From: Pristiophorus japonicus | Lineage: Eukaryota | DNA: 64,000 bases | Reading direction: 5' to 3' | Assembly (NCBI RefSeq): GCF_044704955.1 | Contig: NC_091995.1 | Span: 16,058,001 to 16,122,000 of the forward strand | Shown here: piece by piece, positions 156-49,641 of the stretch | How positions within the stretch are numbered: position 1 is the first letter of the stretch | How the letters are laid out: each line of letters starts with the position of its first letter | Notes under the pieces: generated by a model | What the model saw: the letters and a program-made list of their open reading frames with translations, nothing else | Databases searched by the model: none | What the model was told of the DNA's origin: nothing | Program-made: the position numbers and the translations under genes

Positions 156-275
156 CTTTATTTCCCCATATCAGTCGAAATGTCAGAAATATGATTAAGA
201 CAGCTATCAAGGCCAGTGCGACCAGCAAAACCGGTGTTATATCGGTCTTCGCATTCTTTGGTACCTTTGTGCGGC
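156..275 (-). CDS. Gene A stalk/transmembrane exon (C)RTKVPKNAKTDITPVLLVALALIAVLIIFLTFRLIWGNK(G)
   Basis: Acceptor TCTGTTTATTTCAG, donor AAG|GTTTGT, 120 nt, phase 1-1, about 21 hydrophobic residues. Same length as the gene B TM exon, sharing the RTK start and ALAL core. Not in the ORF track. Confidence 0.85.
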
Positions 276-27134: not shown

Positions 27135-27141
27135 TTATTTC
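27135..27141 (-). CDS. Gene B probable terminal coding exon (R)K-stop followed by 3'UTR
   Basis: Strong acceptor TTTTTCATGCTCCCACAG|G AAA TAA TAG completes the phase-2 codon and gives tandem stops, followed by unique sequence. This is the least constrained exon of the model. Confidence 0.55.
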
Positions 27142-30100
27142 CTGTGGGAGCATGAAAAATCAGCATACAATTAATTCTGTAACAATGTTTTAATTTATTT
27201 ATTTGATGTGGGTGTCATCTGCAAAGCCAGCATTTATTACCCATCCGTAATTTCCTTTGAGAAGGTGGTGGTGAGCCACCATTTCAGTGGGTAATTAAGA
27301 GTCAACCACATTGCTTTGGGTCTGGGGTCACATATAAGCCAGACCATGTAAGAATGGCAGATTTCCTTCGGTAAAGGACATTAGTGAACCAGATGTGTTT
27401 TACAACAATCCAGTAGTTTCATGGCCACCATTACTGATATTAGCTATATTTAATTATTTAATTAATTGAATTTAAATTCCCCAGCTGCCGTGGTGGGATG
27501 TGAACTCACGTCTATTAGATCAATAATCCATAAGCATTCGGTTGTGAGTTGAAGCCTAGTAAATTGCTCGCGATTATCGACTGTGCCTTTTATTGTTGAT
27601 GCAATGCATTTAGTCTCGTTTAACTATTACCATTGAACAAGGTTTAAAGGGGGAGCGAGAAACAGGTAAACGGAGAAACTGGATCGAAGCATTTGTTGCT
27701 AAACTGAAGTCGCCATTAATAAAAATTGATAATTAATAATTTTGCTCAAAAGTCAGTGTCTACCAGCCCTGCTAGCTCTAAACTGTAGTGTTAGTGGATG
27801 GCAGGGAATATTAAACCAAGGTCGCGCACAAGAGATTTGTGTGCAAAATTAAAGCACATGGTGTTGGGGGTAATGCATTGTCGGGGATAGGGAATTGATT
27901 GGCAGACAGGAAGCAGAGATTCGGAATAAACAGGTCCTTTTCAGAATGGCAGGCAGTGACCAGTGGGGTGCCGCAGGGCTCAGTGCTGGGATCCCAGCTA
28001 TTTACAATATACATAAATGATTTAGATGAAGGAATTAAAGTAATATCTCCAAGTTTGCAGATGACACTAAGCTGGGTGGTGGTGTGAGCAGTGAGGAGGA
28101 TGCTAAGAGGCTGCAGGGTGATTTGGACAGGTTAGGTGAGTGGGCAAATGCATGGCAGATGCAGTATAATGTGGATAAATGTGGGGTTATCCACTTTGAT
28201 GGCAAAAACAGGAAAACAGAATATTATCTGAATGGTGACAGATTAGGAAAAGGGGAGGTGCAACGAGACCTGGGTGTCATGGTAGATCAGTCATTGAAGT
28301 TTGGCATGCAGGTACAGCAGGACGTGAAGAAGCAAATGGCATGTTGGCCTTCATAGCTAGAGGATTTGAGTATAGGAGCAGGGAGGTCTTACTGCAGTTG
28401 TACAGAGCCTTGGTGAGGCCACACCTGGAATATTGTGTTCATTTTTGGTCTCTTAATCTGAGGAAGGTCGTTCTTGCTGTTGAAGGAGTACAGCGAAGGT
28501 TCACCAGATTCATTCCTGGGGTGGCAGGACTGACAAATGAGGAGAGATTGGATCAACTGGAGAGACTGGAGACTGGGCTTGTATACACTGGAGATTAGAA
28601 GAATGCGACGGGATCTCATGAAAACATATAAAATTCTGACGGGATTGGACAGGTTAGAGGCAGGAAGAATGTTCCCCGATGTTGGGGAAGTCCAGAACCA
28701 GGGGTCATAGTCTAAGGATAAGGAGTAAGCTATTTAGGACCGAGATCAGGAGAAACTTCTTCACTTAGAGAGTGGTTAACCTGTGGAATTCTCTACCACA
28801 GAAAGTTGTTGAGGCTAGTTCGTTAGATATATTCAAAAGGGAGTTAGATATGGCCCTTATGGCCAAAGGGATGAAGGGGTATGGAGAGAAAGCAGGAAAG
28901 GGCTACTAAGGTTGAATGATCAGCGATGATCTTACTGAATGGCGGTGCAGGCTCAAAAGGCCGAATGGCCTGTCCCTGCACCTAATTTCTATGTTTCTAT
29001 GTAACTTTCTTAGTTACATTTTATAAAAAAATATACTAATCAAATTACTGTCGGTGAAAACTCATGATGTATGCATTTGAAACAAATAACTTTAGCTCAT
29101 TGTCCGTTCCCCTCGGAACATTAGTTGAGACATGCATCGTGTGAAGAGGCAACTTGCATTTTTTGTGGTATATATTTGATAGCTTGCAGAGTTGTGTGAG
29201 ATCGTACCTGTTCAGCTCACTGTAACTGTCCACACCTTTCAGCTCCAAACCCTTATAAAAATGGAAGAAATCCATATTATTTCAAACCCTTGAGATAGAA
29301 AAAGGCTGCTGTTAATTTATTCAGGATAATCAGTTCATGTATTTTACCATGTATGTAGAATCCACGTTAGTGTGATTACCGGTTTCAGTCTGCGAGACAC
29401 CTATATCGAAATAACGACACCAAATAACATTGAATAAATAAACTATTATAATGTTACAAGTACATCTTCTGTCTGCCTATCATCTATCTATCGATCTATC
29501 TACCTAGCTATCTCTCTATAGACACATGCAAACACAGAAAATTGGAGTAGGAGTAGGCCATTCGACCTTTCGAGCCTGCACCACAATTCAACAAGATCAT
29601 GGCTGATCAGTCACCTCAGTACCCCTTTCCTGCTTTCTATCCATACCCTTTGATCCCTTGAGCCATAAGGGTCATATCTAACTCCCTCTTGAATATATCT
29701 AATGAAGTGGCATCAACAATTATCTGCGGTAGCGAATTCCACAGGTTAAAAGCTGTCTGACTGAAGAAGTTTCTCCTCTTCTCGGTCCAAAATGGCTTGC
29801 CCCTTATACTTAGACTGTGACCCCTGGTTCTGGACTACCCCAACATCGGGAACATTCTTTCTGCATCTACCCTGTCCAGTCCCGTCAGAATTTTTAATGT
29901 TTCTATGAGATCCCTTCTCATTCTTTTAAACTCCAGTGAAAATAAGCCTAGTCAATCCAGTCTTTCTTCGTGTATCAGTCCTGCCATCCCAGGAATCAGT
30001 CTGGTGAACCTTCGCTGCACTCCCTCAATAGCAAGAACGTCCTTCCTCAGATTAGGAGAACAAAACTGAACCCAATATTCCAGGTGAGGCCTCACCAAAG

Positions 30101-33100
30101 CCCTGTAAAACTGCAGTACGACCTCCCTGCTCCTATACTCAAAGCCCCGAGCTATGAAGGCTAACATGCCATTTGCATTCGTCACCACCTGCTGTACCTG
30201 TATGCCAACTTTCAATGAGTGATGTACCATGACACCCACGTCTCGTTGTACCTCCCATTTTTCTAATCTGCCACCATTCAGATAATATTCTGCCGTCACG
30301 TTTTTGCCCCAAAGTCGATAACCTCACATTTATCCACATTATACTGCATCTGCCACGTATTTGCCCACTCACCTAACCTGTCCAATCATCTTGCAGCCAC
30401 ATAGCATCTTCCTCACAGCTCACACCGACACCCAGCTTAGTGTCATCTGCAAACTTGGAGATATTACAGTCAATTCCTTCATTTAATCATTGATATATAT
30501 TGTAAATAGCTGGAGTCCCAGCACTGAGCCCTGCGGCACCCCACTAGTCACTGCCGGCCATTCTGAAAGGGATCCGTTTATCCCGACTCTCTGCTTTCTG
30601 TCTGCCAACCAGTTTTCTATCCACATCAATACATTACCCACCATACCATGTGCTTTAATTTTGCACAACTATCTCTTGTGTGGGACCTTGTCAAAAGCTT
30701 TTTGAAAATCCAAATACATCACATCCACTTGTTCTCCCTTGTCCACTCTACTAGTTACGTCCTCAGAAAATTCTAGAAGATTTGTCAAGAAAGATTTCCC
30801 TTTCATAAATCCATGCTGACTTGGACCGATCCTGTCACTGCTTTCCAAATGCGCTGCTATTTCATCTTTAATAATTGATTCCAACATGTTCCCCACTGCC
30901 GATGTCAGACTAATCTGTCTATAATTCCCAGTTTTCTCTCTGCCTACCTTTTAAAAAAGTGGTGCTACATTAGCTACCCTCCAGTCCATAGCAACTGATC
31001 CAGAGTCAATCGATCTTTGGAAAATGATCACCAATGCTTCCACTATTTCTATGGCCACTTCGTTAAATACTCTGGGATGCAGACTATCAGGCACTGGCGA
31101 TTTACCGGCCTTCAATCCCATCAATTTCCCTAACACAATGTCCTGACTATTAAGGATTTCCTTCCGTTCTTCCTTCTCGCTAGATCCTCTGTCCCCTAGT
31201 ATTTCCGAAAGGTTATTTGTGTCTTCCTTCGTAAAGACAGAAGCAAAGTATTTGTTCAATTGGTCTGCCATTTCTCTGTTACCCATTATAAATTCACCTG
31301 ATTCTGACCTACGTTTGTCTTCACTAAGCTTTTTCTCTTCATCTATAGAAACTTTTGCAGATAGTTTTTATGTTCCCAGCAAGCTTCCTCTCATACTCTA
31401 TTTCCCCCTCCTAATTAAACACTTTGTCCTCATCTGCTGGATTCTAAATTTCTCCCAGTCCTCAGGTTTGCTGATTTTTCTGACCAATTTATGGGCCTCT
31501 TCCTTGGATTTAACACTATCCCTAATTTCCCTTGTTAGCCACGGTTGAGCCACCTTCCCCATTTTATTTTTACTCCAGACAGGGATGTACACTTGGTGAA
31601 GTTCATCCATGTGATATTTAAATGTGTGCTATTGCCTATCCACTGTCAACCCTTTAAATATCATTCACCAGTCTATTCTAGCCAATTCACATCTCATACC
31701 ATCGAAGTTACCTTTCCTTAAGTTCAGGACCCTAGTCTTTGAATTAATTGTGTCACTCTCCGTTTTAATAAAGAATTCTACAATATTATGGACACTCTTC
31801 CCCAAGGGGCCTCGTACAACATATTGCTAATTAGTCCTTTCTCATTAAACATCACCCACTCTATGATGGCCAGCCCTCTAGTTGATTCCTCGACATTATG
31901 GTCTAGAAAACCATCCCGAATACACTCCAGGAAATCCTCCTCCACTGTATTGCTACCAGTTTGGTTAGCCCAATCTATATGTAGATTAAAGTCGCCCTTG
32001 AAAACTGCTGTACCTTTATTGCACTCATCCCTATTTTTTTTTAGTTTGATGCTGTCCCCAACTTCACTACTACTGTTTCGTGGTCTGTACACAACTCCCA
32101 ATATCGTTTTCTGCCCTTTGATATTCCGCAGCTCTACCCATACAGAATCCATTTCATCCAAGCTAATGTCCTTCCTTACTATTGTGTTAATTCCTCTTTA
32201 ACCAGCAATGCTTCCCCACCTCCTTGTCCTTTCTGTCTATTCTTCCTGAATGCTGAATACCCTTGGATGTTGAGTTCCCAGCTTTGGTCACCTTGGAGCC
32301 ATGTCTGCATAATCCCAATTATATCATGTTCGTTAATAGCTGCCTGCGCAGTTAATTCGTCCACCTTGTTATGAATATTCATCGCATTGAGTCACAGAGC
32401 CTTCAGGCTTGTCTTTTTAACACACTTTCTCCCTTTAGAATTTTGCTGTAATGTGGACCTTTTTGATTTTTGCCTTGGGTTTCTCTGCCCTCCAATTTTA
32501 CTTTTCTTCTTTCTATCTTTTGCTTCTGCCCCCATTTTACTTCCCTCTGTCTCCCTGCATAGGTTCCTAGCCCTCTGCCATATTGTTTAACCTCTCCCCA
32601 ACAGCACTCTACCTATCTAGCGATCTATCAATCATCTATCTATCTATTATTCAAGTTATTGGGTGTTAACTATATTACATGAAAAGACATTACTCAATAA
32701 AGAACTCTAAACCCAACAATGTGCGTCAATGGCCGTTTAAACTTTACTGACCAACAGCTATAAAAACAACAAAAACTTGTATTTATATAGCGGCTTTAAT
32801 GTAGTAAAACCTCCCAAATGCTTCACAGGAGCGTTATTAAACAAAATTTGACAACGAGTCAGAAAAGGAGAAATTAGGTCGATGACCAAATTCTTGGACA
32901 AAGGACAGCTTTTAAGGGGCATTTTAAACGAGGAAAGAGAGGTAGAGAATCGCAGATGTTTAGGGCCTTGGCAACTGAAGTGAGAGCTACCAATGACTGA
33001 GTGATTAAAATCATGGATGCACAACAGGCCAGAATTTGAGGAGCACAGGTTTCTCAAGGGATTGTGGGGCTGGAGAAGTTCGCAGAGAAAAGGATGGGCG

Positions 33101-36100
33101 AGGTGATGGAGGGATTTTAAAACAAGGATGAGAATTTAATATTGCGGTGTTGTTTAACTGGGAGTCAATGTCAGTCAGCGAACACAGGGGTGATGGGTGA
33201 ATGTGACTTGGTGCGAGCTAGGACACAGACAACAAAGTTTTGGATAACCTCAAGTTTATTTAGGGTAGAATGTGGGAGGCCAGCGAGGAATGCATAAGAA
33301 TATCCGAGTCTAGAGGTAACAAAGGCATGCATGCGGTTTTCAGTAGCAGATGATCTGAGGCAGGAACGGAGTCAGGCAAAGTTATGCAGGTGGAAAAACA
33401 TGGTTTTATATATGCCATGGATATGTGGTTAGAAGAACATATCAGGGTCAAATATGACAGCAAAGTTACGAACAGCCTGGTTCAGCCTCATACGGAGGCT
33501 TGGAAGATGATGGAGTCAGTGGCTAGGGAATGGAAGTTGTAGCGGGGACCAGCCACAAGGACTTTGGTCTTCCCAATATTTGGTTGGAGGATACTTCACC
33601 ACATCCAGTACTGGATATCAGACAAGCAGTCTGACAATTCAGAAACCATGGAGGTATCGAGATAAGTGGTGGTGAGGCAGAGTTTGGTGTCATCAGCGTA
33701 TATGTGGAAATGAATGCTTTGTTTTCAGATTAAGGGACTTCATGTGGATGATGAATAGGAAGAGGCCAAGGATAGACCCTTGGGGGAGACCAGATGTAAT
33801 GATGTGGGATCGGGAAGAGAAGCCATTGCAGGTGATTCACTGGCTACGATTTGAAAGATAAAAATGGAAGCAGGCGAGTGCAGTCCCACCCCGTTGAACG
33901 GCGATGGAGAGGCATTTGAGTAGGATAGAGTGATCAACCATTTCAAAGGCTGTCGACGGGTCAGGAAGAACTAGGAGTGATAGTTTACCTTTGTCGCAGT
34001 TACCAAGGATGCCATTTGTGACTTCGATGAGAGCCATTTCAGTACTGTGGCAGGGGTCGAAACCAGATTGAAGGGGTTCCAAAAGGATTCCCGGGAAAGA
34101 TATGCACGGGTTTGGGAGGTAACAACACATTCAAGGAATTTCAAGAGGCAAGCGATGTTATAGATGGGGTGATTGTTTACAAGGACGGAGGGGTCAAAGG
34201 TTGTTTTTGGAAGAGAGGAGTAATGATGGCAGATTTGAAGGAGAAAGGGACAGTACCTGAGGAGAGAGAATCATTAACAATATCAGCTAACACGGGAGTC
34301 AGAAAAGGAAGTTGGATGGTCAGCAGTTTTGTGGGATTCGGGTCAAGGAAGCAGTGGGTCTCATAGACAAGATGCGCTCGGAGAGTGCATGAGGGGAGAT
34401 CAGAGAGAAACTAGAGATAGATGTAAGTTCAGGGCTAGAGGGGAAGCCTTAGAGGGAGTTTGGTCCTCTGGGCTTGGGAAAGGAAGGAAAGTGGCAGAGG
34501 CAGATGATCGGATGGTCCAAAACTTAGAGACAAAGACTCCATGAGCTCATCGCACTGATTCCTGGTGAAAATGGAGGAGACAGGGAAGAGGGATGTAAGA
34601 AGATGGTTTGCAGCACAGAAAAGAAACGGGGAGTTATATTTGCATCACAGAAAGATCCTGCAATAGTGAGCAGTTTTTGAAGACGAGAGCAGGATCCCGA
34701 TAGCGCTTTATGTGGTCCAGCCAGATCTGGTGGTGAATGGCTAAACCAGTTGTCTGCCATATCCATTCAAGTCTGCATCTCTACGACACATGGGAGCGGA
34801 GATGAGAGTCGTATCAGGGGAATAGCCAAGGTGAGAAAGAGTAATGGTTTTTAATAGGAACCAGGGCAAGAAAGGTGGTGGTGAGGATGTGGTTGAGCAG
34901 GTCGGTAGCTGTAGAAATGTGGTGAATGGAGGAACAAAGGCTAGACAGTTGGGATTTTGTAAGTACAGTTGTAAGTAAGGTTATTTGAAGTGGTAAGTTT
35001 GGATAAATATGTGTCTATAGCGATGTGCTAGATATAACAGGATGATTTACTGGGATGGTTATTGCAAGCGTCGTGCTAGAAATGTTGGATATTTGCAATT
35101 TCTACAGATGTCACAATGGATGAAAAATTGCTCTGGTCGTAATGTTTTGTCACAGCCAAAATAAATTTAAAAGAACATGGAGCATTACAAATGTTAAAGC
35201 CCTGTTCAACAAAGGGAAGAGCGATAAATCTGGTAACTACCAGCCAGTCCGTCGAACAATGAGTACTGGAAAGCCACTTGGGACTACTGCCAAGGACATC
35301 AATAATTCTCACTTGGAGAATATGGGACAGCGAGCATGGATTTCATTAAGGCAAATTGTGCCTGACTGACACGATTGAGTTATGTGTTGAAGTAACAGAG
35401 ATGGTTGAATGTGGCAGTGGATGATAAAGACTTACTCGGAAAATAGAAAAACGTGGTAATAAAGAGATGGTGGTAACTTAGGTCCGGAATTTGCTAAGTG
35501 ATCGGAGGTCGGCCTCAACTGGAGTATTGTGTCCAATTCTGGGCACGACACTTTATGAAGGTTTAATAAAGATTTACGAGAATCGTTCCAGGGATGAGGG
35601 ACTTCAGTTCGGTGGATACTCTAGAGCAGCTGTGATTGTTTTCCTTAGACAGGAGAAGTTTCAGAGGATATTTTAAAGAGGTGCTCAAAATAATGAGGCG
35701 TCTAGACAAAACATACATGGATAAAACTGTTCCTATTTTCAGAAGTGTCGAGAACCAAGGACACAGATTGAAGGTGATTGGCAAGAGAACCAAAGGCAAA
35801 ATGAGGAAAATCTTTTTTTACGCAGTGAGTGGCTGAGATCTGGAATGCACTGCCTGAGAGGTTGGTAGAGGCAGATTCAATTGTGGCTTTCAACAGGGAG
35901 TTGGATAAGTCCCTGAAGGAAAAAAATTACAGGGCTATCGGGAAAGAGATAAGAGAGTGGGACTAGCTGAAGTGCTCTTGCAGAGAGCCGACATGGGCTC
36001 AACGGGCCAAATGGCCTATTTCTGTGCTGTAACCATTCTATGCTTCTATCTGATGATATGGTTAATGGATGTTTTTTTCTGACTGGAGTGAAGTATACAG

Positions 36101-39100
36101 TTGGGTCCAGAAGAGGTCGCTATTAGTACCATTGCTTTTCTTGCCATATATAAATGACATGGATTTGGATATTGGGAGCACAATTTCGAAGTTTGCGGGC
36201 GATACAAAATGTGGCAAGTAGTAAATAGTGAGCAGGATCGTAGTGGATTTAGGAAGACATCGGACGACTGGTGGGAACAACAACATGCAGAGGCAATATA
36301 ATCTGGATTGTACTATTTTGAGGGGGTGCAAGAGCAAAGGGACCTGGGGTTTCACAAATCTTTGATAGTGGCAGAGCAATTTGGCAAGGCGGTTAAAAAA
36401 GCATATGAGACTGTTGACTTTGTAAATAGGCATATCAAATGCAAAAAGAAGGAAGTCATGCTAAACCTTTCAGATCACTGGGTCGGCGTCAGCTAGATTA
36501 TTGCTGTACAATTCGGGGCACTGCACTTTAGAAAGAAGGGTGAGGGTACAGAGGAGGTTTACCATGGATGAAGGACTTCCGTTATGTCGAGAGCTTGAAG
36601 AATGGAGACTGGGATTGTTCTGTTTGGTGCAGAGAAGGTTAAGAGGAGACCTAATAGAGGCATTCAACATCAGAAGGTCTTTCGATGGAGCAAGCAACTG
36701 AGTCCTCTGGCAAGTGAATAGACAACTACATTTTAAATAATTGGCAAAAGAACTAGAGGGGAAATTGGGAGAATATTTTCACACAGAGGATTGTTAAAAT
36801 GTGTAATGTACTGTCTGAAATGGCGGTGGAAGCAGATTCGATGGGAGCTTTCAAAGAACAATTGGACACGAACTTGAAACTAACTAATTTGTAGGGTTGT
36901 GGGGACAAATCTGGGGTGTGGGATTGGACAGCTCTTTCCAAGTGCCGGTACAGGCACGACCGGCCATATGGCCTACATCTGGTCTGTAAGATTCTATGAT
37001 TCATCATCTTTGATGCCGCTACACATAACAACCAGAGCAATTCTCTCCTGCAGAAGAAATCTCATTGCTATGTTAAGACTAAGTATTAGCGGCAGCGGGG
37101 ATTGTTCCTCGTGTCACCTAATAGCAGCATTGACCAAAGGATGTCCGTATACATTCCACACCAATAAATCATAATTTAAGTTATTTCTGTCGAAAGTTCA
37201 ATAATTGTCGAACCTGATGTCCAAAGTCAAAAAGTATAAAAAGCAAAATGTAATCAATAAATTTACAGCGGTTTTAATATGACCACGCACTTTACAAACT
37301 TCTCTATAGATTCCAAAATATCCCATTGCAATAGTTTTCAAATGAATATTGCATTTTTGCATTCATCATTTTGGTTTTAAAGGATTATTCCAAACACTTA
37401 AGGACATTGTTTCCTTCTCTTAGTTTTCTTCAGGCCACAAAGTGTACGAACTAGAGTGCCAGGCTCCTAATATCTCATCATGAGCGTCCATCGCGTTGTA
37501 AATCTTTCAATTTTATTTCTTAATCATAGAATAGTTACAGCACAGAAGGAGGTCACTGGGCCCATCGAGTCTGCACTGGCTCTTTCGAAGAGCAAGCCAG
37601 TTAATCTCACTCCCCACCCCCTTCCCTGAAATATTTACTCCGTCAAATATTTACCCCGTCAAATATTTACTCAATTCGCGTTGGACGGCTACGATTGAAT
37701 CTACACTTGCAATGTTATGCATTCAAATTCGAACCACTCCTTGAAAAAAGTTGTTTCCTCATGTCACCTCTGGTTGTTTTGCCAACCATCTTATATCTGT
37801 GTCCTCTGGTTGTCGATGTTTTGAAACAGTTCCTCCTTATGTAATCTAACTAAATCCTGCATGATTTAAAACAAATAACTAATGAAATAAGGTCTTGCTC
37901 ATTTCGGTTGTTCTGCTGACTACAATATATTCGATTTACACCATGGAAATATAATGGTTAATCATATCAGTTCTGATTCAATGGGTAGAAATTAGACCTG
38001 GTGGTTAGTGTAAAAGGATCTTGAAAGAAAAGCGGATGGGGTAAACCGGGCTGACGATTCGCTATCGTTCATTTTGCGGTATCGTTCAAGAGAAATTATT
38101 CTCAGTATTCCAGGCATTTCATCGAATAGATTGATGCTTTCTACCCCACCCAGACAGGGTTAAAGTTTACAGTTAAACTCGTTTAAAAAAAATTGAAATG
38201 TCAATTATACTTGCAGTTTCATACAGTGCGTCGGTGTTGCACGAGACCATGGTTTAAAAGAAATTTATAGCGTGCATTATCAGAGAGTGACCCGTTGATG
38301 GTGATATTCCATTTGAAAAGATACTTACCACTGCATTTCCATTTCAGTATGCATGCTAGTGTTATCACGATTAGAGCAGCCAGCAAGGCTAGTGCGCTGC
38401 ACAGTCCAGCTGTAAAACCAGTCTTTGGGGCCTGGGACTTTGTCCTTCCTGAAATGATGAAATTAAATCAGTGTTTTTGTTTCTATTGCCAGCATAAAGC
38501 TTAGGAACAAAGGTGACTGACTGTTCTACCCAAGGCAGTAAATTAATATTTTAAATGAATATCTGCATAAACAACAATGTGTATAAATAATGGCGAATCA
38601 GCCCTAGTTTTAATTCTCTGTCTCTCTCTAACATATAAATAAGCCATTCATCTCTGTTCCAACGCACCGAAACAGAAACAGTTGCGTGTTCATTTTAACC
38701 TTCTACAACATCACAATAATTAACTCAGAGAAATAGCACCTTGTAACCAAGGGACATGTCTGAATCATTGGTACGGTTTCTTTATCGAAAGCATTATTTT
38801 TAATATCAACACTTGCCTGATTTGCAGTTTGGTCACATTCCTCTCACACTTTCCCCATTCCCGTCATCGTGGTCGTTATAGGGATCTAAGCCTGTCCCCC
38901 TATCCCATTAGATATTTTAGTACGCATTCTCCTAGTGTCAACCAAGCAAGTGAGTGGCCGTCCCATCACGGAGGGAATCGCATTTTCGCCCAAGCTTGTC
39001 TTCGGCGATATCTATATTCTTCACTTTTCATTGGGTTATGCCCAGATTTCTGAAACCGACATAATTATCCCCACCCCCATCCCCAACCCCTCCCCAACCC

Positions 39101-42100
39101 CTCCCCAACATTTGCAGTGCCCCTACTGACAGAAATTAACTCATTAAGCACTGACCCCGAAGTCGAACGCGGGTTTTTCGTGCTCAGTATAACTCAATGC
39201 CGCTCCCGCATTTGGAGAAAGGTTTATAATATGTTGAATAGACGCTTCATGAAATGTTGGCGTGACGGAAAATATGAGAAGGAAGCAGAATAAAAATGAA
39301 AAAAAGACTAACATTTCTACAGGACATCAGGACATCAGGACATCCCAAAGCACTTTATAGCCAATGAAGTACCTTTGAAGGGTAGTCATTGTTGTAATGT
39401 AGGAAACACAGCAGCCAATTTGCGCACAGCAAGCTCCCACAAATAGCATTGACCAGATAATCTGTTTTTAGTGACGTTTATTGAAGAATAAATATTGTGC
39501 AGGCATGAGGGAGCACACCCTTGCCCTTCTCCGAAATAAGGCCATGGATCTGTCATGTCTACCTGAGAGGGCAACTGGAGCCCCTGTTTAACGTCTCATC
39601 TGAAAGACGGCACCCCCGACAATGCAGCGCTCTTTCAGGATTGCACTGCCGGATTTGAACCCACAAACTTCTGACTCAGCAGGCGAGAGAGTGCTACCCA
39701 CTGACCCACACTGTCAGATAGTAAACTGATAAGAAACGATATTGCCCTCGCTCTTAGCCAAAAGGCCAAGATATAAATAAGATCACAACATTTAAACCTT
39801 ACACTTGAATTTCGTAAACTACTGAGTGAAATAAATCGATGTAAATATATGAACTGTCATTTGGTGTCCATGATGGTGACGTTTCGGAGGTTGAAAATAT
39901 AACTATAATGTAGGGAAAAGTAAGAAAATATTAATGAACAATCCCTTCACTTTGACTCTCGGGATGAAAAAATATGGCGCAATAATTACGCATGCCAATT
40001 AGTTATTAATTTCGATTGCCCGCTATTTAAAGACAGACACAAATTTATTGATTACAACAAATAAAAGCCGATGTCAAAATTGTGTGAGGAGATGTAGCAC
40101 TGTCTAATTTTGCCACACTTGCCTTACTATCATGTGCTGAGCGAGACACGCCACCACGTTGCAGATTATTAAGTAGTGTAAACAATGCACTGCACTGGCA
40201 TGCGGCAAACTAATACTACAGTCATTGAAACAGAGAGAACGGAATCATGCCAATACTCTACCTGTAAAATTAGAACAGATTTATTTTATCAAGAATGGTT
40301 GGTATTTGCAACTTACGTATCACTTCCAATTTGGTGCCATTTCCGTATCTCTCCCCTTCTCCCATTAAGTCTATCCGGCAATAATAGATGTCTGAGTCTT
40401 TCTCAGTTAAGTCGGAGATGTTAATGAATATTCTGCTGTTGGCAAATGAATATCTGTCGGATTTCTGCAGCCGGTCTGCATAAAACGGACTGTCGTTCAG
40501 TTTGTACCCATTTGGATTTCCCCGTGTCCAATCAGCAATGCCGACCGGAAGTAGGGTTCCTTCAAAAGCCATGGCACAGTGCAGTGTCACTGACTCCCCC
40601 TCTGTCGTACTTATAAAGGGAGGGAACTGGTAGACCGTGATATTCATCGTCCCACCTGCTGAAAAATTAAGTTTAATCTTTAAACCAGATGAATACTGCC
40701 CTCCACACCTGGCTAATGCTGATCAGTTTTCTGATCTTAAAGGTAATCATGCCTTTCACATTATATAAAGACAATTATAAAAAGTTAAACTTAGAACATA
40801 AGTAATAAGAGCAGGAGTAGACATTTGGTCGCTTGAGCCTGCTCCACCATTCAATAAGATCATGGCCGATCTGACCTTGGCCTCAACTGCATTTCCCTGC
40901 CCGCTCCCCATAACCCTTGACTCCTTTTTCGTTCAGAAATCTGTCTATCTCCACCTTAAATATATTCAATGAAACTTGAAGGCTGAAAACTCAAAATGCT
41001 GCAAATATACAACTGACTCTAGAACTATACAACATATGCAGGGTTATTCGGCCACTCAAATCAGCTATTGAACTAAAAATGAGATTTTGAATGCTATGAC
41101 ATTTATAATTTCTCGTTTATTCAGAAATTGTGTTTGCACAGAGTTGGGTGAATCTGCTAAACCGAGTGGCAACGAGAATTTAGTGCGTGTGAATTCAGTG
41201 ATAAGTAACGGGTAATTAGAACAGATTGCATCAACCTGAAATTTATCAACATTTTCTTATTCTAAAGCTGTGAATCATGCAAGTTAACAGTCAATTACCT
41301 GACTAGCTGTTAATTCTAAAAACAAAATATTGTGGATGCTGGAAATCTGAAATAAAAACGGAAAATACAGGAACTGATACACGAACTATCAGAATGATAC
41401 CCGGATTAGCATAATAATATTCAGATTTCAAGGGTTAAGTTATGAGGATAGCTTACACAAATTAGGGTTGTATTCCCTAGAATTTAAATGTTAAGGGATG
41501 ATTTGATCAAAGTTTTCAGGAACAGCTAGGGGAGATAGAGATAAACTATTTCTGCTTTTTAGGGAGTCTAGGACTAGGAGCCATAGTCGAAAAGTTAGAG
41601 CCAGGCCATTCATGAGTGAAATTAGGAAACACTTCTACACACAAAGGGTGGTAGAAGTTTGCAACTCTTTTCTGCAAATGGCAATTGACGCTAGATCAAT
41701 CATTAATTTTAGATGTGAAATTGATAACTAACCATATTAAGGGATATGGAGAAAAAGCCGGTATGTGGAGTTAAATCGCAGATCAGCCATAATCTCATTG
41801 AATGGCAGAACAGGGCTGAATCACCTCCTCCTATTACTATGTTCCTATGATCCTAAATACCCAACAGGTCAGGCAACATCTGTGGAGAGAGAAACAGGGT
41901 TAATGTTTTAGGTCATAATAACATAAGAGCATAAGAAATAGGAGCAGGAGTACGCCATTTGGCCCCTCGAGCCTGCTCCACTACAAGAGTAAGATTCAAT
42001 ATCAAAGATGTTATCTGGATATGATGGGAGCCCTGAGCTGGCTAAACAAAACGTACACAAGATGACGACTCGTTGCTCTTTGATCTCGGAATCAATGGAG

Positions 42101-45100
42101 CAATAAAGGACATCCAATGAGGATCTAATATAACCATATAACAATATAAGGCGAGTGACACCTGGAAGAAGGGAACAAATGGATATTTGATCGTGGGTTG
42201 TTACAAACAATCACGTGACTGTTAAGGTCTGTCCACGAAGACACTCATGTGCTAAAGCCTGTATAATTGAGGTGCAATTTCAACAGCTCGTTGGAGATCC
42301 TCTCTCAGCTGGCTGAGAAGTGAGATGCTCCCCCTTCACGTGTTGGAATTAAAGTCATTGAAATGTATCCAATGTATCCGTCTGTTGAACCCGGACTTGT
42401 TAAGAGAGGAGAAGGGTGATTCTCCCCATCATCCGCCATTCAATAAGATCTAGGCTGATCTGATCATGGACTCAGCTCCACTTCCCTGCCCGCTCCCCAT
42501 AACCCTTTAGTTCCTTATCGCTGAAAAATCTTCAATGATATCCACAGCTCTCTGGGGCAGAGAATTTCATAGATTTACAACCCTCGAAGAGAAGAAATTT
42601 CTCATTATCTCAGTTTTAAATCGGCGGCCCCTTATTCTGAGATTATGTCCCATAATTTTGCTTTCCCCTCTGAGTGGAAATATCCTCTCTGCATCCACCT
42701 TGTCGAGCCCCCTCATTATCTTATATGTTTCAATAAGATCACCTCTTATTCTTCTGAACTCCAAGGCCCAACCTACTCAACCTATCTTCATAAGTCAACC
42801 CCTCATCTCCGGAATCTCTAGTGAAAGGTCATTGAACTTTCATCAGAACTGGAAAAAGTTAGAGACGTTACAAGTTTAAGCAAGTGCAGGAGCAGGGAAA
42901 GGAGGTGAGAAGAAGAAAGAACAAAATGGAAAGTCTGTGATAGGGTGGAGGGCAGGAGTGATTAAATAACAAACGGGGTAACGGGCAAAGCAAAAGGAGG
43001 TGGTAATGGGACAAGCAAAGACACAAAAGATGACTCAGGAAGAGGTGTAAATGGTTAGATAAGAACAATTACCAGTACCTGCTGCACGAAATAAATGAGA
43101 GCAGTGATTATGATCTGAAATTGTTGAATTCACTTTTGAGTTCAGAAGGCTGTATAGTGTTTGATTGAAAGCTGAGGTGCTGTTCCTCGAGCTTCTGTTG
43201 AGCTTCGTTAGAACAGTGGAGGGGGCTGAGGAGAGAGAGCTCAGATTTGGGATGGGCACCGGAGAATTAAAATGAGAATTAAAAAGGTTCACGCTTGTGG
43301 ACTGACCGAAGATGTTCAGCAAAGCGGTCACCCAATCTGCATTTGGTCTCCCAGTGTGGAGGAGACCACATCGTGAGCAGCGAATACAGTATAGTAAATT
43401 GTCAGAAGTACAAGTAAATCTCTGCTTCACCTGGAAGGAGTGTTTGGGGCCCTGGACTGTGGGATAGGAGGAGGTAAAAGGGCAGATGTTGCATCTGCTG
43501 CACTTGCACAGGACGGTACCGTGGGAAGGGGAGGAGGTGTTGAGAACATAAGAACATAAGAATTAGGAACAGGAGTAGGCCATCTAGCCCCTAGAGCCTG
43601 CTCCGCCATTCAACAAGATCATGGCTGATCTGGCCGTGGACTCAGCTCCACTTACCCGCCCGCTCGCCATAACCCTTAATTTCCTTATTGGTTAAAAATC
43701 TATCTATCTGTGATTTGAATATATTCAATGAGCTAGCCTCAACTGCTTCCTTGGGCAGAGAATTCCACAGATTCACAACCCTCTGGTAGAAGAAATTCCT
43801 TTTCAACTCGGTTTTAAATTGGTTCCCCCGTATTTTGAGGCTGTGCTAAAACCGAGTTCTAGTCTCCCCGACCAGTGGAAACAACCTGTCTGCCTCTATC
43901 TTGTCTATCCCTTTCATTATTTTAAATGTTTCTGTAAGATCACCCCTAGAGGAGTGGTTCAGAGTGTCTCAAAGGGAACTGTCAGGCGCAGTGGAAGGGA
44001 ATCATTGGCTGAGGAAAAAGGAACGCATATCGGAAGCACTAATATGGAAGGTGCGATCGTCAGATCAGATGCAATGGAGATGAAAAAACTGGGAGACTGG
44101 AGTAGAGGCCTTATAGGAAGCATGTTTGGAGGAACTACAATTAAAGTATCTGTGGGATTCAGTGGGATTATCGTAGATATTAGTCAATAGTCCATGGAGA
44201 TAGAGAACTCGAGGAAAGGAGGGGAAGAATCAGAGATGGGCCATGTGAATGCGATGGACGGGTGGAAATTGGAAGCAAAGTTGATGATATTTTCCGGTTC
44301 AGGGCGAGAGAAGAAAACCGTGTCAATTCCAGTACAATACTGGAAAAAAAGGTTAGCGAGGGGACCAGAGTATGACTGTAACAAAGCATGTTCCACATAT
44401 CTCACGAAAAGGCATGCATATCTAGGACCCATACAGGTTCACATAGCAGCACCTTTTATTTGGAGGAAGTCAGTGGCGTAAAAGGAGAAGTTGTTGACTG
44501 TGAGAACACTTCTAACCAGGCGGAGGAGGGTGGTGGTAAATGGGAACTGGTTAGTCCTCCGTTCAAGGAAGAAGCGGAGCGCCCTCAGGCCATCCTGGTC
44601 ATGGATGTAGGTGTAGGGGACTGGTGTTAATTTTTGTGGCTGGCTGTTGGCTGACTAATTGTAACTCGTGTTTTTCTCAACGATATGTATTAGAGGGATA
44701 TTTGCTAAACATTCAGAGCTGTCTGTGCAGAGCTGGGTGAATCTGTTAAATGGAACAGCAGCGGTAATTTGGTGAGAGGTGGAATTCTGTGCAGAATATA
44801 AAGGAGGTGTAAAGTGCGTTAAACATAAGAACAAAACAAATAGAACAGGAGTAGGCCCTTTGGCCCCTAGAGCCTGCTCCGCCATTCAATAAAATCATGG
44901 ATCATCTGATCTTGGGCGCAGCTCCACTTCCCTGCCCGCTCGCCATAATCTTTGACTCCCTTAAACTAAGGGGCACTTGATGAATATATAAATAATCACA
45001 ATAAGTAATTTGAGGATACCAACAGTAAAGGGATCCAAATTGCATTAACTGAAATCTGATATAGATAAATAATTAAGTAATGAATAGGAGTAAGGCGGAT

Positions 45101-48100
45101 ACTAAAATAAAACATATATATATAACATAAGTAGATAATAAAATGATGTGACAGCTGAGACCCGTTGCCTGCAATTCCTATGCCATTTCCAGCACGTTTC
45201 TTGCATCCTGCATAATCATGTGTACAGGAAGTGCCTGCAGTTGCTCAAACTCGAGTTCAGGGTTTCTAAGCTTGAGGAGCGGCTGGACTCAATGCAGGTC
45301 ATACGGGAAGCTGGTAATTATCTGGAACCCAGGTTTCACGACGCAGCAAGTACAGAGAGCACCGGAGAATAGTAAGTGGGTGGCCATCCGGCAGGGTAGG
45401 TGGAGGAAGGTAGTGCAGGAATTCTCCGGAGTGTAGCACTCTGAAATTGGTTTTCTGTACGGAATACTTTGGGGCAAATAACTGCACAGGGAGACACAGC
45501 AAAGTATAGAAATGCAGTCGTCATAGGAGATTCGATAGTCACGGGAATATACACGCATCTCTGAAACTAACCACCTGAATCCCTCAGGGTGTGTTGCCTC
45601 CCTGGTGCCAGGACAAACTACATGACTGAGACGATACAAAACATTTTGAGGGGGGAGGGGAATAGCCAGATGTTGTGGCCCATGTGGGAACCGATGGCAT
45701 AGGAAGGAAAATGGGTCCTGCAATTCGAGTTTCATAAGCTACGGAGGTAATCAAAGATTACGAGCTCAAAAGTAGCAATCTCTGATTTACTCCCAGTGCC
45801 ACTCGCTAATGTATATAGAATAGTAGGATAAGATAGGTTAACACGTGCCTGATGAAATGGTGCAGGAGGAAGGATTTCACATTTCTGGGACAATGGGACC
45901 AGATCGGTGTGATTGGGGTGGGGGATTGGGGCGGATCTGTACAAGCTGGAAATATGGCATCCCAATAGAACAATGAGAGGTGATCGCATTGAAACATACA
46001 AGATTCTGCAGGGGGGTTGACAGGGTGGATGCTGAGAGGCTGTTTCCCCTGGCTGGAGCGTCTAGAACTAGGGGGCACAGTTTCAGGATAAGGGGTAGGC
46101 CATTTAAGACAGAGAGAAGGAGGAATTTCTTCATTCAGCGGGTTGTGAACCTTTGGAATTCTCTGCCCAATCTTATTGAATTGTGGAGCAGGCTCATCGA
46201 GCCGTAGGGCCTACTCCTGCTCCCAATTCTTATGTTCTTATGTAGAACTGGTACCAATATCCACATGGGATGGTTAACTGGTGCAATGGAGAAGGGTTTA
46301 AATGAATTTGGCTGGGGTATTGGCACAACCATGAAACAATAGCGAGGAGAAACAATGTGCACAGAGGACTGGGAGAGACAAATAGCACTAGAGTAAAGAA
46401 CAGTTCAGAAATAGGAGGATTTAGATGGGAGGAAAAGGCACTTCAGACTAAGATGGATCTGGAGTTCATGAGCATAAATGCACGTAATGTGCTAAATAAT
46501 ATTGGTGAGCTGCAGGCACAAATCGTCACATGTTACTTTGATATTATGGCAAAAAAAGAGACCAGATTCAAAGAAATGGGGAATTGGGAACTATTCCTGG
46601 CTATTAGGTACTCATGAAAGATAGAGAAGGAAAAAAGGAGGCGTGGCAATATTGATCAAATAAACTATTATAACACTGGAAATAGATGGTATAGTTGAGG
46701 GCTCAAAGCAAAATCTATTTGGGTAGAGTTAAGGAGCAATTGGGCTACTGGGTGTATACTATAGGTAACCAAATAGTACGAAAGCGTAAATTTTCAGGCA
46801 AATTACAGAACGATGCAAGAATTACAGAGTAGTGATAATGGGGGAATTCAAGTATCCTAATTTGGACTGGGATAGTAACAGTGTAAGGGGAAAAGATGTG
46901 AAGGAATACCTGAAATGTATACAAGAGAACTTGCACAATCAGTGTGTTTCCAGCCCGACGATGAAGGAAGCAGTGCTGGATCTCGTTCTGCGGAATGGAG
47001 TGCAGCAAGCGAAGTATATTTAAGTGGGGTATCATTTGGGGAGCAGTGATCAAAATATCATCAGGCTATGGAAAAGGACCAGGAATAATCAAGCATAAAA
47101 GTATTAACTAGGAGGGCTAATTTCAGTGAGTTAAAAATGAATCTGGCCCAGGTGGATTGGATCAACCATTGGTAGGCAAAACATTGATTGAACAATGAGA
47201 GGCCTTCAAAGAAGAGATGGTTCAACTAGGGAATAGAAACATTCCCATCAGAAGGAAAGGAATGTCATCCAAAGCTAGGGCTCTCTAAATGACTAAAGAT
47301 ATAGAGGTTACAAATAGGCAAATAAAGGAGGCCTATGATAAATGTAAGGTTCATAACACAGTAAAGAACGAAGCTGAATAGAGAAAGTACAGAGGAAATC
47401 TATAAAAGGAAATGAGGTACGAAGAGAGAGTATCTGAATAGATTAATGTTTAACATAAAACTGGACCTGAAAATCTTTTATAAACACATAAATAATAAAA
47501 GGGTAGTCAAAGGAAGGGTGGACCAAAAGAACCTAAAAGGAGATATGCTTGGCTGCAATAGTAAATGAGTACTTTGCAGCTGTCTTCACTGGAGAGGAGA
47601 CTGCTGCAAAGGTAGCGGTAAATTAGGAGGCAGTAGTTATATTGGATGGGATACAAATAGATAAAGAGAAGGTAATTGAACGTTTGGAAGTCCTCAAGAT
47701 CGAAATGTTACCCGGTCCGGATGGGATGCATCCTAGGTTGCTTTTGCAAGTAAGGGACTAAATTGCAGAGGCCCTGGCTACAATCTTCCAATCCTGCTTA
47801 GATATAGGGGTGGTACCAGAGGACAGGAGTATTGCAAATGTTACACTTCTGTTTAAAAAAGGGGAGTGGGTTAAACATGGCAATTGCAGGCCAGTCAGCC
47901 TAATGCCCGTGGTGGGGTTACTTTTAGAGATAATAATCCAGGACAAAAGGAATTGTCACTTGGAAAAGTATGGACTAATAAATAAAAGTCAGCGCAGAAT
48001 ATTTAAAGGCAAATCGTGTTTGACTAGCTTAATCGAATTCTATCATGAAGTATCGGAGAGGATTGCACTTTCAAAAGGCCTTTGACAAATTACCCCCGAA

Positions 48101-49641
48101 TAGACTTGTTAGCAAAATTGAAGCCCAGGGGATTAAAAGGACAGTGGTAACATGGATACGAAGTTAGCTAAGGGACATAAAGCAGACTGTAGTGGTGAAT
48201 GCTATTTTTTCAGAATGGAGAGAAATATACAGTGATGTTCCCCAGCGATAGGTAGAGAACCACTGCTCCTTTTGATATATATTAATTACATTGACTTGGG
48301 TATACACGGCATAATTTCAAAGTTTGCAGATGACAGGCAACTTGAAAATGCAGTAAATAATGAGGAAGATAGTAACAGACTTCAGGAGGGCATGGACAGA
48401 CTTGGTGAAATGGGGAGACACATGGTAAATGCAATTTAACGAAAATAAGTGTGAAGTGATATTTTTTGATGTGAAGAATTAAGAGAGGGAATATGAACTA
48501 AATGGTACAATTTAAATGGGGAGTACAGGAACAGATGGACCTGCGAAGTCAGGATCGAGTCTGTCCGGAAATTAGTAATTCACAAAACATTCGCCTAAAT
48601 ATGATTTAATCGGTCCTGCATTGGTTATGCAACTATGTCAGGTCTATAATCTGTCTGAATTTAAGGTGTCTTTTTCAATCTGCGCTTCAATGACTTTAGA
48701 ATGAAAATACACAAATTCATCCCAACATAAGTATTACCAGCAACATATATATTCTGTGATTCGCTTATAGTTTCTGCAGATGACTGCAGAGTTTTATTTA
48801 AATACTTGTACCGTTAGTGTGGATACCGAAGATGAGCGGCCGATGCAACTGGCCGAATTTTAAAATATATCAGAGAAAAACAGTCGTACGCGTTATTAAT
48901 AGTGCAGTAAGAATTCTATCTCTTAGCGACATGGCTGAGTGCATTCAGAAAGATTTTTCAGAAGCTGTGAAAAGTAAACTGAACTCTTCACTTACTTACT
49001 ACCTCGCTTACAATTAGTTTTCAGAGGAATTCCTGCTCTGCAAATTTAGAGCACCGAATGAAATTAATTCAGATCCATGCCCGGAAATGAAATACCAAAT
49101 AAAAAGAAAGTGTCAATTGATCGAATATTATCATTGGAGAGCACCGAGCACAAACAAGCTAGCATCATTCGAAAGTGGCACAAGTGATAGAGAAAATCGG
49201 GATTGCTGAAATCCATAGGTTACAGTATGGCAACTGTCTATGCATAATGGCACTATCACTTCACATTTTGTGAAAAAAACGTACCCTTATTACAGGAAAA
49301 TCACAGTAAGATAAGATCGGATGGCACGTAAGCAAATAATATATTCACCGATATACTGACATCGTTTCCAACACGCTAATTGTGTGCAAAGTATTCAATT
49401 TAAATGTATTTCAACATTATATTCAGAATTATACAGTACTATAAGGTAACGATGATAATAAGTTAACTAGAGCATCACAGATTACCCAGTTGTCTAACTT
49501 AACTACCTTAACTAGAATGTCAAATAGTACCGACTGGTATAAGTAGAGCATTATATAATAACGAATAATATAAGTTAACTAACCGGTGCTTAGCATAAAG
49601 AGAATCAGCTGTATAAAATTAATGTGTTGAATTAAAACCAT
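27135..49641 (-). CDS. Gene B: NKp30/NCR3-like single V-J Ig-domain receptor with uncharged TM and cytoplasmic ITAM, six coding exons, 207 aa
   Basis: join(49584-49641,40317-40658,38329-38448,29348-29400,29208-29251,27135-27141) is 624 nt and open throughout. All introns are GT-AG, phases 1,1,1,0,2. Domain order is leader-V-stalk-TM-ITAM-stop. Confidence 0.88.
27815..29002 (+). mobile_element. CR1 LINE, 5'-truncated, in the last intron of gene B
   Basis: [18 protein letters not shown] and RRFTR motifs; TTTCTATG tail. Confidence 0.92.
29208..29251 (-). CDS. Gene B cytoplasmic exon 2, [14 protein letters not shown] (distal ITAM half)
   Basis: Acceptor TTCCATTTTTATAAG, donor CAG|GTACGA, 44 nt, phase 0-2. 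Lies inside ORF 29045-29275. Confidence 0.8.
29348..29400 (-). CDS. Gene B cytoplasmic exon 1, (G)[17 protein letters not shown] (proximal ITAM half)
   Basis: Acceptor TTATTTCGATATAG, donor ATG|GTAAAA, 53 nt, phase 1-0. It supplies exactly the phase change needed between the TM exon and exon 29208-29251; a 96-nt intron follows. Confidence 0.8.
29530..32610 (-). mobile_element. CR1 LINE, disrupted near-complete ORF2
   Basis: Endonuclease (GVVYRP, GDFN) through RT ([18 protein letters not shown]) in broken minus-strand ORFs, plus 3'UTR. Confidence 0.92.
32762..34970 (-). mobile_element. L2-clade LINE, degenerate
   Basis: [18 protein letters not shown]...[26 protein letters not shown] near 33690-33702, GCTATATAAATACAAGT tail. 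Confidence 0.85.
35150..37000 (+). mobile_element. Two consecutive old CR1 3' fragments (35150-36050 and 36060-37000)
   Basis: GNYQPV and [11 protein letters not shown] remnants; two ATTCTATG tails. Confidence 0.75.
38329..38448 (-). CDS. Gene B stalk/transmembrane exon (R)[39 protein letters not shown]
   Basis: Acceptor TTTCATCATTTCAG, donor GTG|GTAAGT, 120 nt, phase 1-1. About 24 uncharged residues followed by a KWK stop-transfer. Not in the ORF track on this strand. Confidence 0.9.
39300..39715 (-). mobile_element. tRNA-derived SINE, DeuSINE/SacSINE1-like
   Basis: Reverse-complement homolog of 26157-26595 (TTTGTGGGAGCTTGCTGTGCGCAAATTGGCTGC; B box GGTTCAAATCC). Confidence 0.78.
40317..40658 (-). 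CDS. Gene B Ig V-set exon, natural cytotoxicity triggering receptor 3-like
   Basis: ORF 40270-40647 reads [20 protein letters not shown]...VGIADW...YADRL...[31 protein letters not shown], resembling the NKp30 end CRVEVLGLGVGTGNGTRLVV (recalled, not aligned computationally). Acceptor TTTTTCAG(CAG), donor C|GTAAGT. Confidence 0.94.
41982..42431 (+). mobile_element. Probable solo LTR (450 bp) in intron 1 of gene B
   Basis: Interrupts a CR1 3' end with a 5-bp TSD, TCCAC/TCCGC. Ends ...CATCA, with TATAAT at 42262 and ATTAAA at 42348 in U3-R-U5 order. It starts TA rather than TG. Confidence 0.6.
42820..44630 (-). mobile_element. Penelope-like retroelement (RT plus GIY-YIG remnants) with a CR1 fragment nested at about 43545-43948
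   Basis: [15 protein letters not shown] (PLE RT) and [20 protein letters not shown] (GIY-YIG). Further terminal pieces near 41318-41370 and 41860-41915. Confidence 0.82.
44650..48540 (+). mobile_element. Old CR1 LINE, ORF1 and ORF2 remnants, 3' end missing
   Basis: Remnants [31 protein letters not shown] and SKFADD with many stops. Small CR1 inserts near 44820-44965 and 45970-46245. Confidence 0.8.
49584..49641 (-). CDS. Gene B signal-peptide exon [19 protein letters not shown]
   Basis: ATG at 49641 in ACGATGG context, hydrophobic 19-mer, donor ACCG|GTTAGT, phase 1. Paralogous to the gene A leader. Confidence 0.87.

Follow-up and report, generated by a model that had tools for sequence, protein, structure and literature searches.

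We predict that a gene of the Japanese sawshark (Pristiophorus japonicus), here called gene A, encodes an ITAM-bearing, adaptor-independent activating counterpart of a conserved inhibitory subtype of NCR3 (NKp30), which would have originated via a swap of tail exons. We assign a probability of about 0.55 to this reading. The gene is located in a window of 64 kb (the whole stretch of DNA that was analyzed), together with a neighboring paralog (gene B). It is a member of the large shark NCR3 multigene family and not an isolated oddity.

Exon structure of gene A

The original prediction comprised six minus-strand exons that splice in frame. All six were found at the positions listed in Table 1, with canonical splice sites and matching phases. 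The signals and phases were read directly. The leader exon has the donor g/gttagt and leaves in phase 1. The V exon (acceptor ttttcag, donor c/gtaagt) and the transmembrane (TM) exon (acceptor tttcag, donor G/gtaagt) are phase 1 on both sides. The acceptor of the V exon is of the NAGNAG type, with a second AG 3 nt downstream, so that this exon starts at either 40658 or 40655. Stop codons and frameshifts are absent from the leader, V and TM exons, all three of which are intact. The first ITAM exon (exon 4) has the acceptor atatag and the donor ATG/gtaaaa (phase 1 in, phase 0 out), while the second (exon 5) has the acceptor ttataag and the donor AG/gtacga (phase 2 out). They are separated by a short intron of 96 nt with a good pyrimidine tract. 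Exon 6 has the acceptor ccacag and reads G AAA TAA. The coding parts sum up to 58+342+120+53+44+4 = 621 nt, corresponding to 207 codons, and the junction codons are GCA, CGA, GGT and AGG.

Table 1. Exons of gene A and of the neighboring paralog gene B (positions within the 64-kb window).
Feature	Position	Strand	Remarks
Gene A exon 1	49584..49641	-	ATG start and signal peptide; 19 codons plus 1 nt
Gene A exon 2	40317..40658	-	germline-joined VJ-type V domain; 342 nt
Gene A exon 3	38329..38448	-	11-residue stalk, 24-residue TM, K-W-K stop-transfer; 120 nt
Gene A exon 4 (predicted)	29348..29400	-	first ITAM half, ending in D-S-T-Y-M
Gene A exon 5 (predicted)	29208..29251	-	second ITAM half: G-L, seven residues, Y-S-E-L-N
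Gene A exon 6 (predicted, least certain)	27135..27141	-	completes Arg, followed by Lys and stop
Gene B leader exon	11251..11323	-	context; neighboring paralog
Gene B V exon	3509..3817	-	context; inhibitory NCR3-family paralog
Gene B TM exon	156..275	-	context; 120 nt; cytoplasmic exons beyond the window start

An interspersed repeat abuts exon 6 upstream, within the intron (27188-27280, matching 11750-11846 and 14581-14649). If exon 6 is not used, read-through at the donor of exon 5 keeps the ITAM whole (ORF 29045-29275). Candidate poly(A) signals were found at 26098 (ATTAAA) and at 25914 and 25892 (both AATAAA), and the 3' UTR would extend to the signals near 26098 or 25914. The introns had been described as LINE debris. 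This stands for one intronic ORF, which matches the reverse-transcriptase family PF00078 (1.5e-6, just short of the Pfam cut-off), while the other ORFs that were tested gave no match.

Gene A as a member of the NCR3 family

Homology searches were performed with the exons of gene A taken singly and not with the spliced product. When 751 ATG-to-phase-1-donor candidates from the window were scored against the leaders of four ortholog-type shark NCR3 proteins, the leader of gene A scored best (31.2), followed by that of gene B (24.0). The two leaders both end in GCACCG/GT. Their Smith-Waterman score is 44, compared to 16 +/- 3.5 for shuffled sequences (0/5000 reach 44), and the DNA alignment agrees. 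The TM exons of the two genes are equal in length (120 nt) and are also related (score 45 versus 20 +/- 4 for shuffles, p=0.0002). On the minus strand between 27000 and 49700, there are only two hydrophobic exon candidates that are phase 1 on both sides, and the TM exon of gene A is the stronger one (mean KD 2.79). The other candidate (39152-39316) was rejected because of its odd layout and its position on the upstream side of the TM exon. A likeness of the TM to that of a gecko protein (A0ACB8EGK5; 13/23 identical, E=0.015) was set aside as too weak and too distant. As had been predicted, the TM is uncharged: none of its 24 residues carries a charge, so there is neither a basic residue of the kind that pairs with CD3zeta/FcRgamma nor an Asp or Glu.

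The V exon codes for a whole VJ-type domain (Pfam V-set, 1.4e-9) and has both Cys residues, the Trp, a YYC and a J-like motif (G-N-G-T-K-L-E-V), the last of which was read directly. A phmmer search against PDB returned human NCR3 as the top match (1e-9), with antibody V domains following only about one order of magnitude behind. A structure model of the domain was computed with AF2 (pLDDT 90.3). When this model was compared to PDB by Foldseek, NKp30 structures (3NOI, 3PV6 and 6YJP) occupied ranks 1-3, with TM scores of 0.77-0.79. The nearest proteins are named shark NCR3. The V domain shares about 70% identity with nurse shark NCR3 (QTT61901.1) and falls into a clade with the QTT61901-type NCR3 subtype (support 87/89), the inside of this clade being unresolved. 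The NKp30-like character assigned to this domain at the outset is thus backed by sequence as well as by fold. Judged from their sequences, the leader, V and TM exons of gene A are true NCR3-family exons.

Close V-domain relatives with a complete tail are known from six shark species (nurse, bamboo, horn, cat, hound and sevengill shark), and all of them have a conserved ITIM tail. These inhibitory relatives, all from other species, show 59-70% identity to the V domain of gene A, while the V exon of gene B in the same window is only 41% identical (tblastn). Gene B is itself 100% identical over 92 residues of its V exon to a predicted protein from Pristiophorus japonicus (UPI00398E9DB9), the tail of which carries a V-E-Y-A-S-I ITIM. 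For gene A, a tblastn search downstream of the V exon detected neither an ortholog-type ITIM tail nor the TM exons of that type. V-exon queries of 113 and 128 residues matched only two bamboo-shark fragments. A profile search found ITIM-tailed relatives, yet no sawshark protein model of gene A. Among the 167 proteins fetched, there is no NCR3-like single-V protein with an ITAM, and the database searches retrieved no protein that joins a gene A-type V exon to an ITAM. Kinlein et al. 2021 reportedly described shark NCR3 as a large multigene family, nurse shark NCR3 included, and are said to have found it to be linked to the MHC. No MHC marker gene was recognized within the 64-kb window.

The ITAM exons and their proposed connection to the NCR3 exons

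The tail of gene A seems to carry an ITAM of its own. It reads D-S-T-Y-M/G-L, seven residues, Y-S-E-L and fits the pattern D/E/NxxYxxL/I-x7-YxxL/I. The motif is split over two exons at a phase-0 boundary after Y-M, and such a two-exon layout is that of the classical ITAM (PMC4536121). The exact ITAM that had been proposed for the tail is thus classical in its sequence and in its layout. A further correspondence is found in a multi-VJ receptor from the bamboo shark Chiloscyllium plagiosum (XP_043552676.1). In this protein, the first ITAM half has the identical D-S-T-Y-M, and Y-S-E-L recurs unchanged as well, so that five residues not prescribed by the consensus (S, T, M; S, E) are common to both.

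Since its donor matches the consensus, the TM exon needs a splice partner, and a further exon is expected downstream. The ITAM exons are phase-compatible (1 into 1) with the only credible TM exon upstream of them, which is that of gene A. A search for hydrophobic exons between 29400 and 38329 revealed no credible rival TM or adaptor exon, which makes it improbable that the ITAM exons belong to an adaptor gene of their own. The predicted join of the TM exon to the ITAM exons thus rests on phase, on splice signals and on no alternative having been found. The 9-kb length of the intron to be bridged and the repeat next to the terminal exon weigh against it.

The same observations argue against a different arrangement, in which the NCR3 exons and the ITAM exons do not belong to one transcript. 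The ITAM pair would then be what is left of a multi-VJ/ITAM gene that was broken or rearranged, namely its stranded 3' end, and gene A would be a tail-less, truncated or decaying NCR3 copy that has lost its ITIM exons. We consider this unlikely, though far from negligible. It would account for ITAM residues that resemble the tail of XP_043552676.1 and not that of any NCR3, and it is consistent with a 9-kb intron full of retroelement fragments, with the inhibitory nature of all relatives and with the lack of an annotated protein that joins an NCR3 V domain to an ITAM. However, neither V nor TM exons of the multi-VJ type occur in the window, and the NCR3 exons do not show the stop codons or frameshifts of a decaying copy.

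It is very improbable that the ITAM of gene A is a chance motif in non-coding DNA. The number of split ITAMs expected by chance under a loose pattern is 2.75 per 64 kb on both strands, and a match of this kind is not significant. In a strict search, both acceptors had to be rich in pyrimidines, the first one also being in phase 1, and the donor had to read GT[AG]. With these splice and phase criteria, the chance expectation drops to 0.06 per 64-kb strand; for the 11.2 kb that follow the TM exon, it is 0.0105. The gene A site is the sole match in the real window. The first ITAM exon is unique sequence and not a repeat. The residues shared with the bamboo-shark tail and the short, well-formed ITAM intron also speak against a chance origin.

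That gene A is simply a known ITAM adaptor chain, an ortholog of CD79a/b or CD3, is suggested by its single Ig domain, TM and single ITAM and by CD79b being among the fold matches (ranks 7 and 29), but this has a negligible probability, as neither CD79 nor CD3 is closest to the V domain (NKp30 is on top by sequence and by fold, while CD79b reaches an identity of only 22-24%), the nearest proteins bear the name NCR3, the gene belongs to an NCR3 cluster beside a paralog with homologous leader and TM exons, and the TM lacks the acidic residue present in all such adaptors (PMC4536121).

Proposed product and its origin

According to our preferred reading, gene A would be an intact member of the NCR3 family in the Japanese sawshark, with ITIM-type cytoplasmic exons being absent from this copy. 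We infer that the TM exon is spliced over a 9-kb retroelement-filled intron to the two short ITAM exons, and that the resulting transcript is expressed and signals. The product would be a type I receptor of 207 codons, in which a single NKp30-like domain for ligand binding is followed by a short stalk, an uncharged TM and a tail of 41 residues. Upon clustering by a ligand, Src-family kinases would phosphorylate both ITAM tyrosines, and Syk/ZAP70 would dock on the phosphorylated ITAM via its tandem SH2 domains. The cell would thus be activated without CD3zeta, FcRgamma or DAP12 as a partner. Because its nearest relatives are inhibitory, gene A may best be regarded as the activating member of a receptor pair.

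The ITAM module was possibly derived from the multi-VJ receptor family that has its own ITAM. It is tempting to speculate, albeit tentatively, that exon shuffling in a squalomorph shark retained three exons of a deeply conserved inhibitory NCR3 subtype (leader, ligand-binding V and TM), while the ITIM exons were replaced by an ITAM module that is related to that of the multi-VJ receptors, a family that is possibly G6f-like.

To our knowledge, NKp30 is the one NK receptor that can be traced from sharks to humans. Its VJ domain is often discussed as kin of the antigen-receptor ancestor. Mammalian NKp30 activates through adaptors, and the closest shark relatives that were fetched are all inhibitory. 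If our prediction is correct, an activating function can be built into the NCR3 chain itself, and paired activating and inhibitory NCR3 receptors arose through tail-exon swapping. Opposing receptors could then read the same class of ligands, with the activating arm being independent of CD3zeta, FcRgamma and DAP12. This would be a natural one-chain design within the family that is closest to the V-J precursors of antigen receptors. It would also offer a simple construct for testing ligands of shark NCR3, since any cell competent for Syk/ZAP70 can serve as a reporter for a receptor made of one chain. The original prediction combined a ligand-binding V domain and a docking module for Syk/ZAP70 in one chain. 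This reading is supported in part, namely in the NKp30 likeness and in the classical nature of the ITAM. The principle is not new, as fish are already known to have single-chain Ig receptors that bear an ITAM themselves (NILT, G6f-like). The weight of gene A is further tempered by the diversity of shark NCR3 having already been published and by the gene model being a prediction from sequence.

Comparison with known systems

Mammalian NKp30, which has an arginine in its TM, lacks an intrinsic ITAM and uses CD3zeta/FcRgamma for signaling. It shares with gene A a single germline-joined VJ-type V domain encoded in one exon, a short stalk and a type I TM. However, the identity is only about 33%, and gene A has an uncharged TM and its own predicted ITAM.

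Shark NCR3 proteins of the QTT61901 type are much closer. They have a homologous leader and V domain (59-70% identity), share the leader/V/TM exon plan and also belong to an NCR3 paralog cluster. Their own features are a conserved TM (L-G-L-G-G-A...), a juxtamembrane Q-N-K-V-I-L-R-L-K-R and an ITIM tail with H-x-E-Y-A-T-I. In contrast, gene A has a different TM, which is closer to that of gene B, and an ITAM instead of the ITIM. Members of this type are C. plagiosum LOC122541531, Heterodontus NCR3-like X2, Mustelus LOC144497821, Scyliorhinus LOC119976781 and Heptranchias XP_067829801. A literature search, with Kinlein et al. 2021 outside its reach, found no account of an ITAM-bearing shark NCR3, which is no proof of absence.

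Teleost NILT proteins are single-V receptors that occur in ITAM-bearing or ITIM-bearing forms (according to the titles of Stet et al. 2005 and of Ostergaard et al. 2009, both cited in PMC3031540). Their V domain is, however, NKp44/TREM-like and not VJ/NKp30-like, and they belong to the bony fish lineage. The teleost G6f-like receptor (G6fL) signals via Src and Syk-type pathways without an adaptor (PMC3528668). Like gene A, G6fL and the bamboo-shark multi-VJ receptor XP_043552676.1, which has A-V-Y-E-N-V in addition to the ITAM, are Ig receptors with their own two-exon ITAM, and the ITAM residues of the latter match those of gene A. Both possess at least four Ig domains together with a Grb2 site (YxN), whereas gene A has one NKp30-like V domain and no YxN. 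As a guess, XP_043552676.1 may be a relative of G6fL.

CD79a/b and CD3 resemble gene A in combining a single Ig domain and a TM with one classical ITAM encoded by two exons. They are, however, adaptors with an acidic TM residue and without independent ligand binding, whereas gene A has an NKp30-type V domain and an uncharged TM. In human CEACAM3 and FcgammaRIIA, ligand binding and an ITAM-like motif are combined in one chain, as in gene A, but their ectodomain families are unrelated to that of gene A, and their ITAMs are non-classical in spacing or sequence.

Exon structure

All six exons of the minus-strand NCR3-family (NKp30) gene model (gene A; exons 4-6 are predicted) and their borders were read directly on the minus strand, and the coordinates and peptide fragments of the original prediction proved correct. 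The junction phases are 1, 1, 1, 0 and 2 (5' to 3'), and the coding total is 621 nucleotides (207 codons). The two ITAM exons are 96 nt apart. Poly(A) signals are found at 26098 and 25914/25892. A neighbouring paralog (gene B), also on the minus strand, is predicted to have an inhibitory tail. The exons of both genes are listed in the table.

Exons of the two NCR3-family genes (slash: exon/intron border)
Gene	Exon	Position	Strand	Features
A	leader	49641-49584	minus	ATG start; 3' end ...ACC G/gttagt
A	V	40658-40317	minus	acceptor ttttcag; 3' end ...ATA C/gtaagt
A	stalk and TM	38448-38329	minus	120 nt; acceptor tttcag; 3' end ...AGT G/gtaagt
A	ITAM exon 1 (predicted)	29400-29348	minus	acceptor atatag; 3' end TAC ATG/gtaaaa
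A	ITAM exon 2 (predicted)	29251-29208	minus	acceptor ttataag after T-rich tract; 3' end AAC AG/gtacga
A	last exon (predicted)	from 27141	minus	acceptor ccacag; reads G AAA TAA
B	leader	11251-11323	minus	paralogous to gene A leader
B	V	3509-3817	minus	NCR3-family V exon
B	TM	156-275	minus	120 nt; paralogous to gene A TM exon

The V exon acceptor of gene A is a NAGNAG (cag/cag/g, 40655-40660); splicing to the second AG would shorten the protein by one residue where leader and V meet. For the TM exon, a phase-1 donor is available at either of two sites separated by 3 nt (A/GTGG and G/GTAAGT, 38329-38332), the second being the consensus. Copies of an interspersed repeat (~80% identical) are found at 27188-27280, immediately 5' of the predicted last exon of gene A, and at 11750-11846, 14581-14649 and 52277-52307. 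A G+C-rich minisatellite (24711-25515; 41-bp unit, ~20 copies, with a 286-bp period as an alternative scoring) is intergenic, between the 3' end of gene A and the leader of gene B, and causes the local GC peak of 0.53. Short tandem repeats occur at 19981-20167 (70-bp unit, 2.7 copies) and 24228-24331 (54-bp unit, 1.9 copies).

Assignment to the NCR3 family

The assignment of gene A to the NKp30 (NCR3) family is solid. Its V exon codes for a V-set domain (Pfam, 1.4e-9). Among solved structures, human NKp30 is the closest by sequence (1e-9), with antibody V domains trailing by about one order of magnitude. The AlphaFold model of the domain (pLDDT 90.3) has three NKp30 crystal structures at ranks 1-3 of the fold search (TM-score 0.77-0.79, 31-33% identity), while SIRP, CD79b, IgNAR and antibody V domains rank behind. 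In an exhaustive HMMER search, the best representative was nurse shark NCR3 (QTT61901.1; 70% identity, 3e-44), and a profile search added counterparts from Chiloscyllium, Heterodontus, Mustelus, Scyliorhinus and Heptranchias. The V domain forms one clade with these relatives (support 87/89); branching inside this clade is not settled. The original prediction of an NKp30-like V domain holds. The diversity of shark NCR3 is the subject of a key publication, Kinlein et al. 2021.

The leader and TM exons agree with this assignment. When scored against the leaders of QTT61901.1-type proteins, the gene A leader outranks every other leader-exon candidate in the window (751 in total). It is clearly paralogous to the gene B leader (alignment score 44 versus 16 +/- 3.5 for composition-preserving shuffles), as are the two TM exons to each other (45 versus 20 +/- 4). 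Both genes have a long leader-to-V intron (9 kb in gene A, 7.4 kb in gene B).

Over 92 residues, the V exon of gene B matches a predicted Pristiophorus japonicus (Japanese sawshark, a squalomorph) protein with 100% identity. The predicted gene B product ends in an ITIM, and this tail is encoded outside the window, past its start. In the public predicted protein UPI00398E9DB9 (480 aa), gene B is fused to an unrelated N-terminus and a second V+TM unit, which suggests a mis-merged gene model.

The ITAM exons

A loosely defined split ITAM is expected 2.75 times per window by chance and is not significant. A strict test demanded four features: a phase-1 acceptor rich in pyrimidines, an open exon, a GT[AG] donor immediately following Y-x, and a second acceptor that is likewise pyrimidine-rich. 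The ITAM exons of gene A are the only match in the real window, the expectation in Markov-shuffled sequence being 0.06 per 64-kb strand, which corresponds to ~0.01 in the 11.2 kb that follow the TM exon. The ITAM is non-random, and its exons are unique sequence, not repeated. The exon boundary falls after Y+1 in phase 0, the layout given for all classical ITAMs (PMC4536121) and also present in the fish G6f-like ITAM (PMC3528668). The ITAM sequence of the original prediction is borne out.

Among 167 proteins fetched, the only membrane receptor with a comparable terminal ITAM is XP_043552676.1 from the bamboo shark Chiloscyllium plagiosum. Both ITAMs have D-S-T-Y-M and Y-S-E-L in common, including five non-consensus residues, from which we infer that the two modules may share a common origin. 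No V or TM exons of its multi-VJ family were found within the window. The database name of this protein is [quoted passage not shown]; it is in fact a receptor that combines several VJ-type V domains with a TM, a YENV site and, at its C-terminus, an ITAM. Its A-V-Y-E-N-V is a YxN site like that of G6f-like, and one may guess that it is the shark counterpart of teleost G6f-like.

Proposed connection of the TM exon to the ITAM exons

As predicted, the TM has no charged residue. Its exon ends in a consensus donor and so must splice onward. On the minus strand of 27000-49700, there are only two hydrophobic phase-1/1 exon candidates: the TM exon and, upstream of it, one with an odd layout. The latter (39152-39316, minus, between the V and TM exons) is open with AG/GT borders; it is unlikely to be an exon, its hydrophobic stretch being at the very start, with no stalk. 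The stretch from the TM exon to the ITAM exons contains no such candidate. The ITAM exons therefore lack a TM that would go with them alone, and a separate adaptor gene is accordingly less likely.

All close V-domain relatives with a complete tail (six species) have in common a conserved TM, the sequence Q-N-K-V-I-L-R-L-K-R next to the membrane and a terminal H-x-E-Y-A-T-I ITIM. A search with their TM and tail sequences gave no match in the window downstream of the gene A V exon. The most economical reading is that the inhibitory tail exons of an NCR3-family gene were replaced by an ITAM module; a conserved inhibitory receptor would then have an activating counterpart in the gene A product. 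It is plausible that the chain carries its own ITAM (probability roughly 0.55). For the predicted adaptor-independent activating receptor, the exons, splice signals, phases, homology of exons 1-3, absence of ITIM exons and the non-random ITAM are shown, while the join from TM to ITAM (38329 to 29400) is a putative splice. Use of the last exon (adjacent to a repeat), expression of the gene, phosphorylation of the ITAM and docking of Syk/ZAP70 are likewise predicted steps.

Mammalian NKp30 depends for signaling on a TM arginine and CD3zeta/FcRgamma. Unlike it, the gene A product, whose TM is uncharged and whose ITAM is predicted to lie in the same chain, would signal in the manner of CD79, G6f-like or NILT-type chains.
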